Shown: piece by piece, positions 7,371 to 18,579 of the stretch
Numbering within the stretch: the stretch's first letter is position 1
Layout of the letters: each line of letters opens with the position of its first letter
NCBI RefSeq assembly: GCF_035594765.1
Contig: NW_026943824.1
Span: forward strand, 7,582,317 to 7,646,316
DNA: 64,000 nucleotides
Direction of reading: 5' to 3'
DNA from: Anolis carolinensis
Taxonomy: Eukaryota
Program-made: the position numbers and the translations under genes
The notes under the pieces: model-generated
Database searches by the model: none
Told to the model about the DNA's origin: nothing
What the model saw: only the letters and a program-made list of their open reading frames with translations

Positions 7371-7525
7371 ATGCCGCCCTTTCCTCTGTGGGTCTTTCTA
7401 ATCCTTCCTTGTGGCACTTTTGGCTTGGAAAACGGGCTCCTCCGGACGCCCCCGATGGGGTGGGTGCCGTGGGAGCGCTTCCGGTGCAACACCAATTGCG
7501 CCCACGACCCCGACAACTGCATCAG
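7371..7525 (+). CDS. Alpha-N-acetylgalactosaminidase-like (GH27) coding exon 1: signal peptide + [13 protein letters not shown]
   Basis: [40 protein letters not shown]...NCI. Join 7371-7525, 10761-10935, 13611-13788, 15134-15228, 16893-17054, 17622-17819, 18319-18579 gives 1224 nt, 407 aa, no frameshift. Confidence 0.92.
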
Positions 7526-7610
7526 GTGAGAGTTGTGTCTCTACCAGGCATGGGCAAACTTTTTTTTTCTCCCCAAAGGGAATTTTTATTAATCATTATT
7601 TTATAATACA

Positions 7611-8149
7611 CTAGCTGTGCCCGGCCACGCGTTGCTGTGGCATTGTCTGGTGGTGTTGGTGAGAAATTGTTGAGGTAGTGGTGGTATTGAATGTCTGTTG
7701 TATGGTTGTCTTTATGTTTAGTATGCACACTGAAGTGGATTATACTGCAATGTGGACTCAAGATAATCCAGTTCAAAGCAGATAATATAAGATTCTAAAT
7801 GGGTTATATAGCTGTGTGGAAGGGCCTTGAGTTTACACTGCCATATAATCGAGTTCAAATTTGATAATCTGTGGAAGAGGCCTAAGTGAGGCCTAACTGT
7901 GCCTGTCCCCTGGGCTGAGTAGGTTGCTAGGAGACCAAGTGGGCGGAGCTTAGCCTTCTAACTGGCAGCAATTGGATAAAAAGTATTATTCCTCTCCCTG
8001 TAATTAGGACTTTATTTTTCTTTTCTTTTTGTTGTATCAACCTAGAGCCGTGAATGATGGGTTGTGTTGTCAAATTTCGAGGTTGGGGGGCCTGTAGTTT
8101 TGTTGTTTTGTCCGCTGCCCTGATGCCATCACTCTTTTATATATACAGA
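7611..8149 (-). mobile_element. Non-autonomous Helitron
   Basis: 5' TC, 3' GC-rich hairpin plus CTAG, inserted between A and T with no TSD. Confidence 0.75.
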
Positions 8150-9580
8150 TAATCATAGTTACATTTTCCTTTTCCATTCCCTTCTCCCTCCCCTTCCCTG
8201 TTGACAACTTAAACCTTATTTTTTTGGTTACATGAGCCTTTTTTCCATTCTTTCCAGTTTTTTCTTTCAGCTTTTGTCATCTGGTTTAACAATCTGTAGC
8301 CATCTGCTGAATTGAGTCCATATTTCTTTAATTTTCTTCTGTTTGTCTGACCACTTTTTTTGTTTCTTATAATGTCCATAATATCCAGTTGTATTTAGTC
8401 CCACATACAGTAGAGTCTCGCTTATCCAAGGTTCTGGATTATCCAAGCCATTTTTGTAGTCAATGTTTTCAATATATCGTGATATTTTGGTGCTAAATTC
8501 GTAAATACAGTAATTACAACATAACATTACTGCATATTGAACTGCTTTTTCTGTCAAATTTGTTGTAAAACATGATGTTTTGGTGCTTAATTTGTAAAAT
8601 CATCACCTAATTTGATGTTTAATAGGCTTTTCCTTAATCCCTCCTTCTTATCCAAGATATTCGCTTATCCAAGGTTCTGCCGGCCCGTTTAGCTTGGATG
8701 AGACTCTACAGTATATTCATTTTTTCAAGTGTCCATTTCTTTTTATCCTTCCACCCTCATGCTATTTCTGCGTGTGCAGCTCTAAACATTATCATCATTA
8801 TTTTTTGGCCTTGGTCCTTAATTCTTCTGTCCCCATATATCCCTATTAACAGAATTTGCATATTTACTGTATATACCCGAGTATAAGCCTAGTTTTTCAG
8901 CCCTCTTTTAGGACTGAAAAATACCCTCCTCGGCTTATAATTGGGTGAGGGTCCTGGTGGGCTTATATTCAGGTCAGCTTATACTCAAGTACAGTAGAGT
9001 CACACTTATCCAAGCTAAATGGGCCGGCAGAATCTTGGATAAGCGAATATCTTGGATAATAAGGAGTTTAGCACCAAAATATCACGATATATTGAAAACA
9101 TTGACTACAAAATTGGCTTGGATAATCCAGAAGCTTGAATAAGCAAGGCTTAGGATACTCTACTGTATATATGGTATATTTATTATTTTTCTCTGTTATT
9201 ATTGGTATTGTTACATTTATTATTTTACTCTATTAATTATTATTATTACGTTTATTATTTTACTCTATTATTGTTGTTACTTTTACATTTATTTTACTCT
9301 ATTTTTATTATTATTAATACATTTATTCTTTTACTCTATTTATTATTACATATTATTTTACTGCAATTATTATTATTACATTTATTATGTCACTCTATTA
9401 TTATTAACAAGATACATAAGCACATTTACATCGAAGAAGATGAAAATAATGATTTAATCAGAATTGAACAGTCATATCTTAAATTACAATTTGATGTAAA
9501 GATTCAAAACCATTTAAACTACTGATGCCTCAATTAATGTAATTTTATTGGTATTTTGGCTTATACTGGAGTCAATGTTT

Positions 9581-10050
9581 TTATTTATTTATTTATTTAT
9601 TTACTTACTTACCTACAGTATTTATATTCCGCCCTTCTCACCACAAAGGGGACTCAGGGCGGATCACATTATATGCATTCAATGCCCATATACACATAGA
9701 ACCGAGACAGAGACAGATGCAGAGGCAATTTAACCTTCTCCTGAGGGGATGTTCGATTCTGGCCACAGGGGGGAGCAACTGCTTCATCATCCACTCTGAC
9801 AGCACTTCCTCATTCCAACGTCGTAAATTAGTTAAATTTGTCTCTCACTTTATAAGTGGTACCTTATTTCCTACTTGATAGATGCAACTATCTTTCGGGT
9901 TGCTAGGTCAGCAACGAGCAGGGGCTATTTTATTTTATTTCATTTTTAATTGATGGGTGCTCACCCCACCACGGGCTGGCCTCGAACTCATGATCTCATG
10001 GTCAGAGTGATTTATTGCAGAGTGATTTATTGCCTGTGCCACAGCCCGGC
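9581..10050 (-). mobile_element. tRNA-derived SINE (Anolis SINE2-like)
   Basis: Reverse-orientation relative of the 12771 copy, with a (TAAA)n tail. Confidence 0.65.
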
Positions 10051-10760
10051 TCCAGTTTTTTTCCCAGTTTTTTTTTTTTTGGTGGTAAAATTAGCTGCCT
10101 CGGCTTATATTCGGGTCGGCTTATACTCGAGTATATATGGTACAGTAGAGTCTCACTTATCCAACGTTCTGGATTATCCAACGCATTTTTGTAGTCAATG
10201 TTTGCAATATATCGTGATATTTTGATGCTAAATTCGTAAATACAGTAATTACTACATAGCATTAATGTGTAATGAACTACTTTTTCTGTCAAATTTGTTG
10301 TATAACATGATGTTTTGGTGCTTAATTTGTAAAATCATAACCTATTTTGATGTTTAATAGGTTTCTCCTTAATCTCTCCTTATTATCCAAGATATTTGCT
10401 TATCCAACGTTCTGCCAGCCCGTTTATGTTGGATAAGTGAGACTCTACTGTATATCAAATTAGGTTTTAGTATGTAATTCAGCCTGGGTTAGAATTTGGT
10501 TCCAAATTTTTTTAATCTTTTTACATTCCCACCATAGATGAGAGTGCCATGACTCCCTACTCCCACAATGCCAACATTTGGGGGCATGGGCAAACTTTGA
10601 CCCTCCATCCAGGTGTTTCGTACTTCAACTCCCACAATCCCTAACAGCCTCAGGCCCCTTCCTTTCCCCCCTCATCCGCTTAGGCTAGAACTAATTAGGA
10701 AATGACATGTATAACCCAAGTCACACTGCCTTCCTTCTGGGTTTTGTTCCCTGCCAACAG

Positions 10761-10935
10761 TGAAGGCCTGATCAAGGCCATGGCCGACCGGCTGGTGGAG
10801 GACGGCTGGAAGGAGCTGGGCTACGAATACGTCAACCTAGATGACTGCTGGGCGGCAAAGAAGAGGGACCCTCAAGGGAAGCTCCAGCCAGACCCTGAGC
10901 GCTTCCCCAGTGGAATCAAGTCTCTGGCCGACTAT
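10761..10935 (+). CDS. NAGA-like coding exon 2
   Basis: 175 nt; GH27 motif GYEYVNLDDCW...DPERFPSGIKSLADY. Confidence 0.95.
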
Positions 10936-11084
10936 GTGAGTCTAGCCCTTCAGACTCAACACTCATGGAAGCCTCTCAGATAAGAACTGCACAAGCAAGC
11001 CCCACTCGTTCTCCTTCTATTCACTACTTACTGGCTTAGGTACCCGCCAATGCCCGGGTGAGGTCTTTTGTAATGATAAATAGA

Positions 11085-16892: not shown

Positions 16893-17054
16893 GTGAATTA
16901 TACGTTGCTGGGCAAAATATGCAACCTTTGGAGGAACTACATAGACATCGAGGACTCTTGGGACAGCCTCTTCCGCATCATCGAGTGGTACGGGAATAAC
17001 CAGGATACGCTGCAGCCGGCCGCCGGACCCGGAAGGTGGAACGACCCCGACATG
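16893..17054 (+). CDS. NAGA-like coding exon 5 (acid/base Asp)
   Basis: 162 nt; [23 protein letters not shown]...[10 protein letters not shown]. Confidence 0.95.
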
Positions 17055-17084
17055 GTAACATCGCATACCTCGCCCCCCACTTCC

Positions 17085-17516
17085 TGTCAGGGTATTGTGT
17101 ATTGTGAAATGTTAAAATAAATTTGGGTTATTAGAAATGCCTTATGTGTTAGTTTTCCGGCAAGGCATTTCAGCAGTTATGGAGTTAATGAGAGTCTGCT
17201 ATGATTGATATATCACAGGACCAATGGGGTCAAGTTTGTTTTGACCGGGACTTTCTTTCTTGTTCCTGTGGAATGCAGAGGAGTTTCCTGAGAGTTGAGC
17301 AGTGTGCTGTGTGTGCATGAGTCGCTTCGGCAAGCACTCATGGAGGAAAGACTGATTTACTCTATTTTGTATATAGTCTTGTAAATAAAAGTTTATTGCC
17401 GTTGGATTTCCAACCGAACTCTCATCTGCTTTCCACACGGGAGACAGTCTGGAGGAGGTGAAGACCGGGATGGTGAATTTTTGGATTTCACTCTGCTACC
17501 CATCATCCCGCTGACA
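17085..17516 (+). mobile_element. Probable solo LTR
   Basis: TGTCAG...CTGACA termini, internal AATAAA, near-TSD cttcc/ctccc. Confidence 0.5.
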
Positions 17517-17621
17517 CTCCCTGCCCCCCAAAAAACCAGGCTGAAATTCCCCTTCTCCATGATTCTGATGCTTTGTATAAATATACGTATGTGTATATCC
17601 TTTGTTCTTCTCCTCCTGCAG

Positions 17622-17819
17622 CTGATCCTGGGGGACTTTGGCCTGAGCCTGGAGCAGTCCAAGGTGCAAGTGGCCATCTGGGCCATCCTGGCCGCCCCCT
17701 TCTTCATGTCTTGCAACCTGCGCAACATTTCGGACGAAGCCAAGGGCCTCCTGCAGAACCCGCAGCTCCTCAATATCAGCCAGGACCCCCGCGGCATCCA
17801 AGGCAGTCGCATCTACAAG
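17622..17819 (+). CDS. NAGA-like coding exon 6
   Basis: 198 nt; LILGDFGLSLEQ...LAAPFFMS...QDPRGIQG. Confidence 0.95.
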
Positions 17820-18318
17820 GTGCGGGGCATGCGTGTGACTTTATCTGTGTAATTTATTGTATTAGTTATGTTCTTGAGCCCTCAGGATAGGAGGGCAATC
17901 AATTAAATATATTATTATTATTATTTTATTATGACACAGCAAACAAGATAGACATGCTGGATTTTGCATCACAAAATCACAAGTCGAACACTTCCCAAGT
18001 GTCTAGGACTGTGTGATGTATTTTCGGATGATGCGCGCAGATCTCAGTAGGGTGGCCTTTTGTAGTTGGCAGATCGTAATTTTGTCATTGTGGACTGTTT
18101 CCAAATGCCGGCTGAGATCTCTTGTCATGGCACCCAGCAAACAAGATAGATATGCTGGATTTCATATCACAAAATCACAAGTCAGACACTTCCCAAGTGT
18201 CTAGGACTGTGTGATGTATTTTCGGATGATGTGTGCAGATGCCAGTAGGGTGGCCTTCTGCAGTTGGCAGATCATAATTTTGTCAAAGACTTTATTGTCC
18301 TCTCTTTCTGTCCCGCAG

Positions 18319-18579
18319 TCCCCCCACTTTGAGGTCTGGCGCCGGCCACTGGTCTTAGGCCAGTTTGCACTGGCGGTCATGAACACCGGCACGGACGGCG
18401 CCCCCAGGCCCTATGTGACGGCCCTGGCCCTGCTGGGCATCTCTGGCTGTGCCTCCGGCTACAAGATCCACGACGTCCTGGAGAAGCGCTTCCTGGGCAC
18501 CTTTGGGTCTGGCAAACTCTTGAATCACGAGGTGGCCCCTACCGGGGTGGCCCTCCTCTTCGTCGAGCCGCTCTGCTGA
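18319..18579 (+). CDS. NAGA-like coding exon 7 (C-terminal beta domain, stop)
   Basis: 261 nt; SPHFEVWRRPL...APTGVALLFVEPLC*. AATAAA follows at 18924 and 19067. Confidence 0.9.
   Translation, partial: SPHFEVWRRPLVLGQFALAVMNTGTDGAPRPYVTALALLGISGCASGYKIHDVLEKRFLGTFGSGKLLNHEVAPTGVALLFVEPLC

Follow-up and report, generated by a model that had tools for sequence, protein, structure and literature searches.

Vertebrates are usually credited with two glycosidases of the GH27 family, and a gene of this family lying next to ZC3H7A in a lizard raises the question of whether there is a third. The two established enzymes are of medical importance, GLA being the enzyme of Fabry disease and NAGA that of Schindler/Kanzaki disease. 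In the standard account, GLA and NAGA are the two vertebrate members of GH27 (PMC548690). The gene in question is located on the forward strand of a 64,000-nucleotide stretch of Anolis carolinensis DNA (RefSeq assembly GCF_035594765.1, contig NW_026943824.1, positions 7,582,317 to 7,646,316), hereafter the window, in whose numbering all positions are given unless stated otherwise. The original prediction for this stretch described an intact NAGA paralog, retained since a whole-genome duplication, lost in the mammalian lineage and probably encoding an uncharacterised glycosidase. The present analysis indicates, with a probability of roughly 0.85, that the anole gene is a copy of an old, gnathostome-wide paralog of NAGA, intact and expressed, the product of which is predicted to be a NAGA-type lysosomal glycosidase. 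Within its known enzyme family, it has been catalogued but remains uncharacterised.

The gene model is complete. Seven coding exons, all flanked by GT-AG introns, span positions 7371-18579 on the plus strand and yield a coding sequence (CDS) of 1224 nt, i.e. 407 amino acids (aa) and a stop codon, with no internal stops (Table 1). The spliced model is 100% identical over 407 residues to A. carolinensis XP_062820290.1, so RefSeq holds the exact CDS, and it equals residues 62-468 of isoform X1, XP_003228708.3 (UniProt H9GA27); an exact look-up of the exon-2 open reading frame (ORF) gave no match, and look-ups of the Xenopus and coelacanth proteins likewise brought up no record. RefSeq names the protein “alpha-N-acetylgalactosaminidase” in the anole and “alpha-N-acetylgalactosaminidase-like” in most other species. 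When each exon was searched against Pfam separately, the GH27 domains were recovered exon by exon and in order, with Melibiase_2 (PF16499) matched at positions 1-26, 28-85, 86-140, 146-171, 177-229 and 230-284 and Melibiase_2_C (PF17450, PF17801) matched by the last exon, which holds the whole C-terminal beta-sandwich domain (residues 322-407). The splice model, the identity to XP_062820290.1 and the AATAAA signals at 18924 and 19067 (plus strand) thus bear out the predicted 407-aa frame with signal peptide, five N-X-S/T sequons and polyadenylation signals.

Transcription and correct splicing follow from the assembled contigs of two sequencing runs (X19 and X20), which skip from 17054 to 17622 and from 17819 to 18319, these joints being introns 5 and 6 of the model. 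A 1759-nt contig covers exons 5, 6 and 7 up to position 19087, ~15 nt past the second AATAAA, and carries a further 623 nt 5' of exon 5, a length that would accommodate exons 1-4 (603 nt) together with a short 5' untranslated region (UTR). In two larger runs, exon 6 is covered along with parts of the adjoining introns, still unspliced, as would be expected of DNA. The additional upstream exon of isoform X1, which begins directly after a 62-bp tandem repeat, places 61 residues before the signal peptide. It is without support in the 1759-nt contig, where there is room for ~20 nt 5' of the start codon at 7371. The extension would bury the signal peptide, and isoform X1 may be an annotation artefact. 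Compared with the orthologue of Lacerta agilis, the ratio of nonsynonymous to synonymous substitution (dN/dS) is 0.12 (NG86) to 0.15 (LWL85) overall, 0.06 in the catalytic domain and 0.30 in the C-terminal domain, all of these being rough figures because dS is saturated (1.1-1.7). The gene is therefore intact, transcribed, spliced and under purifying selection.

The relatives of the protein were reached in several steps. An exhaustive protein search with the last exon returned exon-sized fragments only and no full-length protein, and yielded contigs with orthologous exons (L001-L003) resembling snake, lacertid and frog sequences. A search with a GLA fragment, followed by a profile built from a 255-aa GLA fragment, window exons 4-7 and the orthologous exons of L001-L003, retrieved full-length “alpha-N-acetylgalactosaminidase-like” proteins of squamates, turtles and amphibians. 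A final search with the L. agilis protein (P0095) provided the best 120 relatives, including the true NAGA of many species. Human GLA rows, synthetic human constructs and a primate-like fragment (P0034) were left out of use.

A maximum-likelihood (ML) tree of 91 proteins (414 columns, LG+C20+F+G4, rooted on nine GLA sequences with support 100/100) places the window gene outside NAGA; the duplicate anole isoform X1 and a mollusc protein, which had a branch of 3.75 in a first quick tree, were left out of it. The NAGA clade (41 rows) has support 100/100 and comprises one lamprey protein, 12 chondrichthyans, lungfish, 12 teleosts, mammal, birds, alligator, turtle and nine squamates, among them Anolis sagrei and Sceloporus. 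The window gene groups with 14 other squamates (100/98), then with two turtles (100/99) and then with 13 amphibians (97/82). A second non-NAGA subclade unites coelacanth with bowfin, bichir, paddlefish and sturgeon (97/93), and a third holds six chondrichthyans, including a chimaera (99/92). Both copies, one on each side of the tree, are present in nine species (Sceloporus, Varanus, Gekko, Tiliqua, Euleptes, the turtle Natator, Callorhinchus, Heptranchias and Narcine), on different large scaffolds in the squamates and the turtle. Since these species range from sharks to squamates, the duplication predates the split between cartilaginous and bony vertebrates. All three GH27 genes were found in A. 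sagrei, in which NAGA and the orthologue of the window gene are again on different scaffolds. The exclusion from the NAGA clade and the taxon range agree with the prediction of a paralog rather than an orthologue, and a lizard-only duplicate can be rejected, given that the group spans turtles, amphibians, coelacanth, bichir, sturgeon, paddlefish, bowfin and chondrichthyans.

Characters outside the tree favour a single paralog group as well, namely a cysteine at residue 365, a C-terminal cysteine in a P-x-C motif and a single last exon. Cys365 is found in 41/41 sequences of the group and 9/9 of GLA, and in 0/41 of NAGA, while the C-terminal cysteine occurs in 30 of the 41 group members, across all three subclades, and is absent in every NAGA and GLA. 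A single exon accounts for the C-terminal domain in anole, Lacerta, bowfin, catshark and turtle (the coding-exon lengths of Lacerta equal all seven of the anole), whereas NAGA orthologues are characterised by eight coding exons and an intron within this domain, and in A. sagrei NAGA (XP_060633131) the domain is indeed split between two exons (~21415-21570 and 23301-23504 of its locus, L010; residues ~319-370 and 362-429). A search for fixed differences between the paralogs in the catalytic domain (85% conservation) returned one qualifying column, which lies in the C-terminal domain. The last exon taken alone matches GLA and not NAGA in the PDB. Nevertheless, a mosaic origin by recombination, with a NAGA barrel and a GLA-like tail, was rejected, since the C-terminal domain is on average 30% identical to GLA and 28% to NAGA, too slight a gap to point to recombination, and since the stem branch of NAGA is long. 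These comparisons suggest instead that NAGA is the derived copy and that the window gene retains the ancestral character.

Across the whole protein, the anole enzyme is closest to NAGA in the PDB, with 560 bits (E = 4e-167) to chicken NAGA (1KTB), 511 to human NAGA (3H53) and 445-449 to human GLA. All 13 ligand-contact residues of human NAGA are present by alignment, as the original prediction had it, and throughout the 41 group sequences they are conserved, save for gaps or odd letters that affect three of the positions in one or two rows. The nucleophile Asp158 (human D156) is retained in 41/41 and the acid/base Asp219 (human D217) in 40/41, the remaining row being gapped. Ser190 and Ala193 (human S188/A191), which line the pocket for N-acetylgalactosamine (GalNAc), are invariant (41/41), while GLA has Glu (9/9) and Leu/Phe (9/9) at these sites. 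All eight cysteines of the catalytic domain are kept. The N-terminus is hydrophobic, the mature chain, beginning with LENGLL, lines up at its start with the first residue of crystallised chicken NAGA, and the five sequons are at N126, N179, N203, N290 and N306.

Such a protein would be directed by its signal peptide into the secretory pathway, N-glycosylated and probably delivered to the lysosome. It would be expected to act as a retaining exo-alpha-N-acetylgalactosaminidase by double displacement, following the GH27 mechanism, with Asp158 as nucleophile and Asp219 as acid/base. As the small pocket formed by Ser190 and Ala193 should accommodate the N-acetyl group, the predicted substrates are alpha-GalNAc and probably alpha-galactose, whereas GLA excludes GalNAc because Glu and Leu/Phe replace Ser and Ala. 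With NAGA, the anole protein shares the two-domain GH27 architecture (~59-62% identity), the 13 ligand residues, the Ser/Ala pocket, both catalytic aspartates, the catalytic-domain cysteines, the signal peptide and the N-glycan sequons, and at ~60% identity to solved NAGA structures its fold can be taken as settled. It differs in its position outside the NAGA clade, in a C-terminal domain only ~28% identical, in having this domain in one exon rather than two, in Cys365 and the C-terminal cysteine, which NAGA lacks, and in its location beside ZC3H7A instead of in the NAGA region. With GLA (human 1R46), it shares seven coding exons, a single-exon C-terminal domain and a cysteine aligned with Cys365, and differs in overall identity (~53%) and in the pocket residues. 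Furthermore, exons 5 and 6 of GLA are 162 and 198 nt long, the same as in the anole gene.

The neighbourhood of the gene provides an independent line of evidence. The minus-strand TPR-type ORFs at the start of the window are recognisable as the N-terminal exons of ZC3H7A, which stands head-to-head with the GH27 gene across a spacer of ~1.3 kb. As the first run of N letters begins at 22079 and none precedes it in the window, no assembly gap separates the two genes, just as the original prediction had maintained. The order ZC3H7A (minus), GH27 gene (plus), secreted phospholipase A2 (PLA2) gene (plus) is common to the anole window, bowfin and paddlefish, and the four ZC3H7A exon peptides and a PLA2 exon of the window match the bowfin and paddlefish loci, colinear and on the expected strands. 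In paddlefish, the orthologue is situated between a divergent gene for a 994-aa TPR/zinc-finger protein and a PLA2 gene. In bowfin, it has a PLA2 gene downstream and, upstream, a model with TPR and TXNDC11 domains, TXNDC11 being the human neighbour of ZC3H7A. The orthologue of L. agilis has a divergent 970-aa TPR gene upstream. Within 10 kb of the gene in catshark and in turtle, neither an annotated neighbour nor a ZC3H7A exon turned up. The adjacency to ZC3H7A that the prediction had proposed to look for in other vertebrates was thus found in bowfin and paddlefish, with a TPR neighbour in Lacerta, and the shared three-gene order therefore goes back at least to the ancestor of bony vertebrates.

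The annotation of the bowfin locus itself (L008, GCA_016984155.1, positions 1-25211 of that sequence) merits a remark. A 1744-aa minus-strand model with a ZC3H7A-like TPR part and a TXNDC11 part spans the locus, with the GH27 gene inside its span. This model is probably two adjacent genes fused by annotation.

The distribution of the two paralogs appears reciprocal. Among the matches listed (two lists of the best 120), no bird, mammal, crocodilian or teleost protein falls in the group of the window gene, though many GLA and NAGA proteins of these lineages were returned, and no amphibian protein falls in the NAGA clade, while ~25 amphibian species show the paralog of the window gene. Retention on these lists is thus of the window-gene type only in amphibians, of NAGA only in mammals, birds, crocodilians and teleosts, and of both in squamates, turtles and sharks. 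The predicted loss in the mammalian lineage is supported by the lack of any mammalian member on these lists and is in line with Table S10 of Hara et al. (2018; PMC5901865). Such reciprocal-looking retention suggests that the functions of the two enzymes largely overlap. The amphibian members are often named plain “alpha-N-acetylgalactosaminidase”, and the amphibian “naga” is probably not the orthologue of human NAGA (hidden paralogy). Should this be true, it would bear on the modelling of Schindler/Kanzaki disease in frogs. A tentative extension, for which the odds are rather against, is that the paralog is not merely redundant, having a substrate range, pH optimum, location or tissue of its own while serving amphibians as their only NAGA-type enzyme under the misapplied name; the fast-evolving C-terminal domain and the group-specific pair of Cys365 and the C-terminal cysteine would speak for such a role.

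With regard to origin, the duplication most likely dates from an early vertebrate whole-genome duplication, be it the first (1R) or the second (2R) round. The gene adjoins ZC3H7A, while human NAGA lies near ZC3H7B (both at 22q13.2), hence the preference for this origin. ZC3H7A and ZC3H7B are described as chordate-only paralogs in a preprint (bioRxiv 10.1101/2025.04.21.649502). Of the ohnolog claim in the original prediction, the duplication before the gnathostome radiation and the linkage to ZC3H7A were confirmed, while an origin by whole-genome duplication is consistent with the data. No annotated neighbour was found within 10 kb of A. sagrei NAGA.

Several observations weigh against the overall reading of an old, expressed, NAGA-type paralog, or against parts of it. 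The base of the NAGA-type tree is a polytomy of the three NAGA-like subclades and NAGA, and forcing the three together costs 1.99 log-likelihood units (approximately unbiased test, p = 0.398), so that a single clade is allowed, not demonstrated. The sole lamprey protein falls within the NAGA clade, which is awkward for a simple gnathostome-only 2R origin. The lineage absences refer to the two best-120 lists of annotated proteins, the transcript evidence comes from the transcriptome-sized sets of assembled contigs of two samples in one study, the selection estimates suffer from the saturation already mentioned, and the enzymatic function of the anole protein is deduced from its sequence alone.

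The polytomy and the lamprey protein also speak for an alternative under which the gene is a true old paralog derived from a small-scale (segmental or tandem) or a pre-vertebrate duplication instead of 1R/2R, and the mollusc protein, which fell on the NAGA-type side of the quick tree, though on a very long branch, could be read likewise. This origin is nonetheless improbable in view of the tight linkage to ZC3H7A across bony vertebrates, the chordate-only pairing of ZC3H7A and ZC3H7B, the human band shared by NAGA and ZC3H7B, and the presence of both copies in chondrichthyans and sauropsids.

Still less probable is a decaying gene, or one with a changed role, in which a NAGA-like sequence persists and the protein no longer works as a lysosomal glycosidase. 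The gene does evolve faster than its paralogs (an end branch of 0.29 as against ~0.06 for NAGA of the anole group; 88.7% identity between A. carolinensis and A. sagrei as against 94.8% for GLA), its C-terminal domain is the more loosely constrained one, and it has been lost in several lineages. However, the ORF is intact in dozens of species, the catalytic domain has a dN/dS of 0.06, the ligand residues and catalytic-domain cysteines are kept, and the mRNA is correctly spliced. Moreover, the gene encodes the sole NAGA-type protein of ~25 amphibian species among the matches listed, in agreement with the Xenopus entry of Table S10 (PMC5901865).

Scarcely credible, finally, is that the anole's NAGA orthologue itself was moved next to ZC3H7A by rearrangement, as might be read from a RefSeq name lacking “-like”, from the top overall similarity to chicken and human NAGA and from the failure to find an A. 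carolinensis NAGA protein among the matches listed or in the A. sagrei NAGA cluster, given that the NAGA clade (100/100) excludes the window gene, that its exon layout is unlike that of A. sagrei NAGA, that the same three-gene neighbourhood in bowfin and paddlefish marks the location as ancestral, that A. sagrei holds both genes on different scaffolds, and that Table S10 of PMC5901865 lists a separate anole NAGA, XP_008108973.1. A separate NAGA in A. carolinensis is thus indicated by that table and by the presence of all three genes in its congener A. sagrei.

The old paralog so identified is not a discovery, contrary to what had been expected, since the gene is already recorded in RefSeq, in UniProt and in the gecko-genome study of Hara et al. 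(2018). The latter lists it in Table S10 as an “elusive” gene (AmnPhylome_0000865_sub_002, “alpha-N-acetylgalactosaminidase-like”; PMC5901865), absent from human, dog, opossum, chicken, zebra finch, both alligators, gar, zebrafish and stickleback and present in two turtles, two geckos, A. carolinensis (XP_003228708.2), two snakes, Xenopus and coelacanth. The non-elusive paralog in that table is NAGA, with the anole entry named above and no Xenopus entry. XP_003228708.2 falls in the same 90% cluster as the window protein, and the two records concern the same gene, which Hara et al. catalogued only. Literature searches turned up no described third vertebrate GH27 enzyme, and in the sources found the gene is listed solely in this supplementary table. 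New relative to that record are its occurrence in sharks, chimaera, bichir, sturgeon, paddlefish and bowfin, the conserved gene neighbourhood, the exon and cysteine characters, the residue-by-residue check of the active site, the dN/dS estimate and the evidence of transcription. The gene represents a third ancient and working-looking GH27 member in sharks, basal ray-finned fishes, coelacanth, amphibians, turtles and squamates, and what looks like a clean case of reciprocal loss in an old duplicate pair. It also offers natural variation in an enzyme scaffold of medical importance, against which specificity and stability can be compared. Its remaining value lies in biochemical characterisation rather than in discovery.

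Table 1. The GH27 gene of the window and the features around it (window coordinates; residue labels follow human NAGA).
Feature	Positions	Strand	Remarks
ZC3H7A, first coding exons (TPR region)	1051-2940	-	divergent; ORFs 2779-2940, 2172-2450, 1519-1893, 1051-1188
62-bp tandem repeat, 9 copies	6299-6851		spacer between 5' ends of ZC3H7A and GH27 gene
Upstream alternative exon	6855-7022	+	RefSeq isoform X1 only (468 aa); tblastn 100%
Coding exon 1	7371-7525	+	start codon, signal peptide, start of catalytic domain; phase 2 donor
Coding exon 2	10761-10935	+	DDCW motif (D78/D79)
Coding exon 3	13611-13788	+	Y119, C127, K154, nucleophile Asp in LKLDGC, C158
Coding exon 4	15134-15228	+	CSWPAY: Ser/Ala GalNAc pocket and Tyr
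Coding exon 5	16893-17054	+	Arg and acid/base Asp in WRNYIDI; RNA joint 17054/17622
Coding exon 6	17622-17819	+	end of catalytic domain; RNA joints on both sides
Last exon	18319-19087	+	coding to 18579, stop 18577-18579, 3' UTR; RNA contig ends at 19087
Secreted phospholipase A2 gene	30466-32949	+	two exon-bearing ORFs; Pfam class

The remainder of the window adds further neighbours and a considerable load of repeats. Between the 5' ends of ZC3H7A and the GH27 gene there is, besides the tandem repeat, a GC-rich stretch at ~5530-6100, and an Rfam scan of window positions 1-20000 at gathering thresholds returned no RNA family. Farther downstream, Pfam classes identify a RING gene at 45.6 kb (minus strand) and a long pentraxin at 51.5-53.6 kb (plus strand), and an N-terminus at 57.5 kb is recognisable as that of CLCN7. 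Together with the PLA2 gene, these downstream neighbours correspond to PLA2G10, BFAR, PTX4 and CLCN7, all located in human 16p13. Reverse-transcriptase-like and long interspersed nuclear element (LINE)-like ORFs occupy the minus strand between the PLA2 and RING genes (24024-25242, 28705-29175 and 36025-37845), and runs of N are at 22079-23066, 25519-25648 and 34232-34378.

Within the GH27 gene, introns 3 and 4 carry arrays of 126-138-bp units (14197-14924 and 15576-16410), each unit with a long microsatellite of the ATT/TAA type. Units of a similar kind are found again near 28.3-29.5 kb, and the arrays as a whole resemble a dispersed satellite or an element of the short interspersed nuclear element (SINE)-tail type. 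Introns 5 and 6 (17050-17560 and 17890-18310) contain very high-copy repeats, with summed contig depths of up to millions in all four runs. A peptide-like ORF motif, MMYFRMM..SRVAFCSWQ, appears at 13640-13948 on the minus strand and at 18013-18204 and 18211-18579 on the plus strand.

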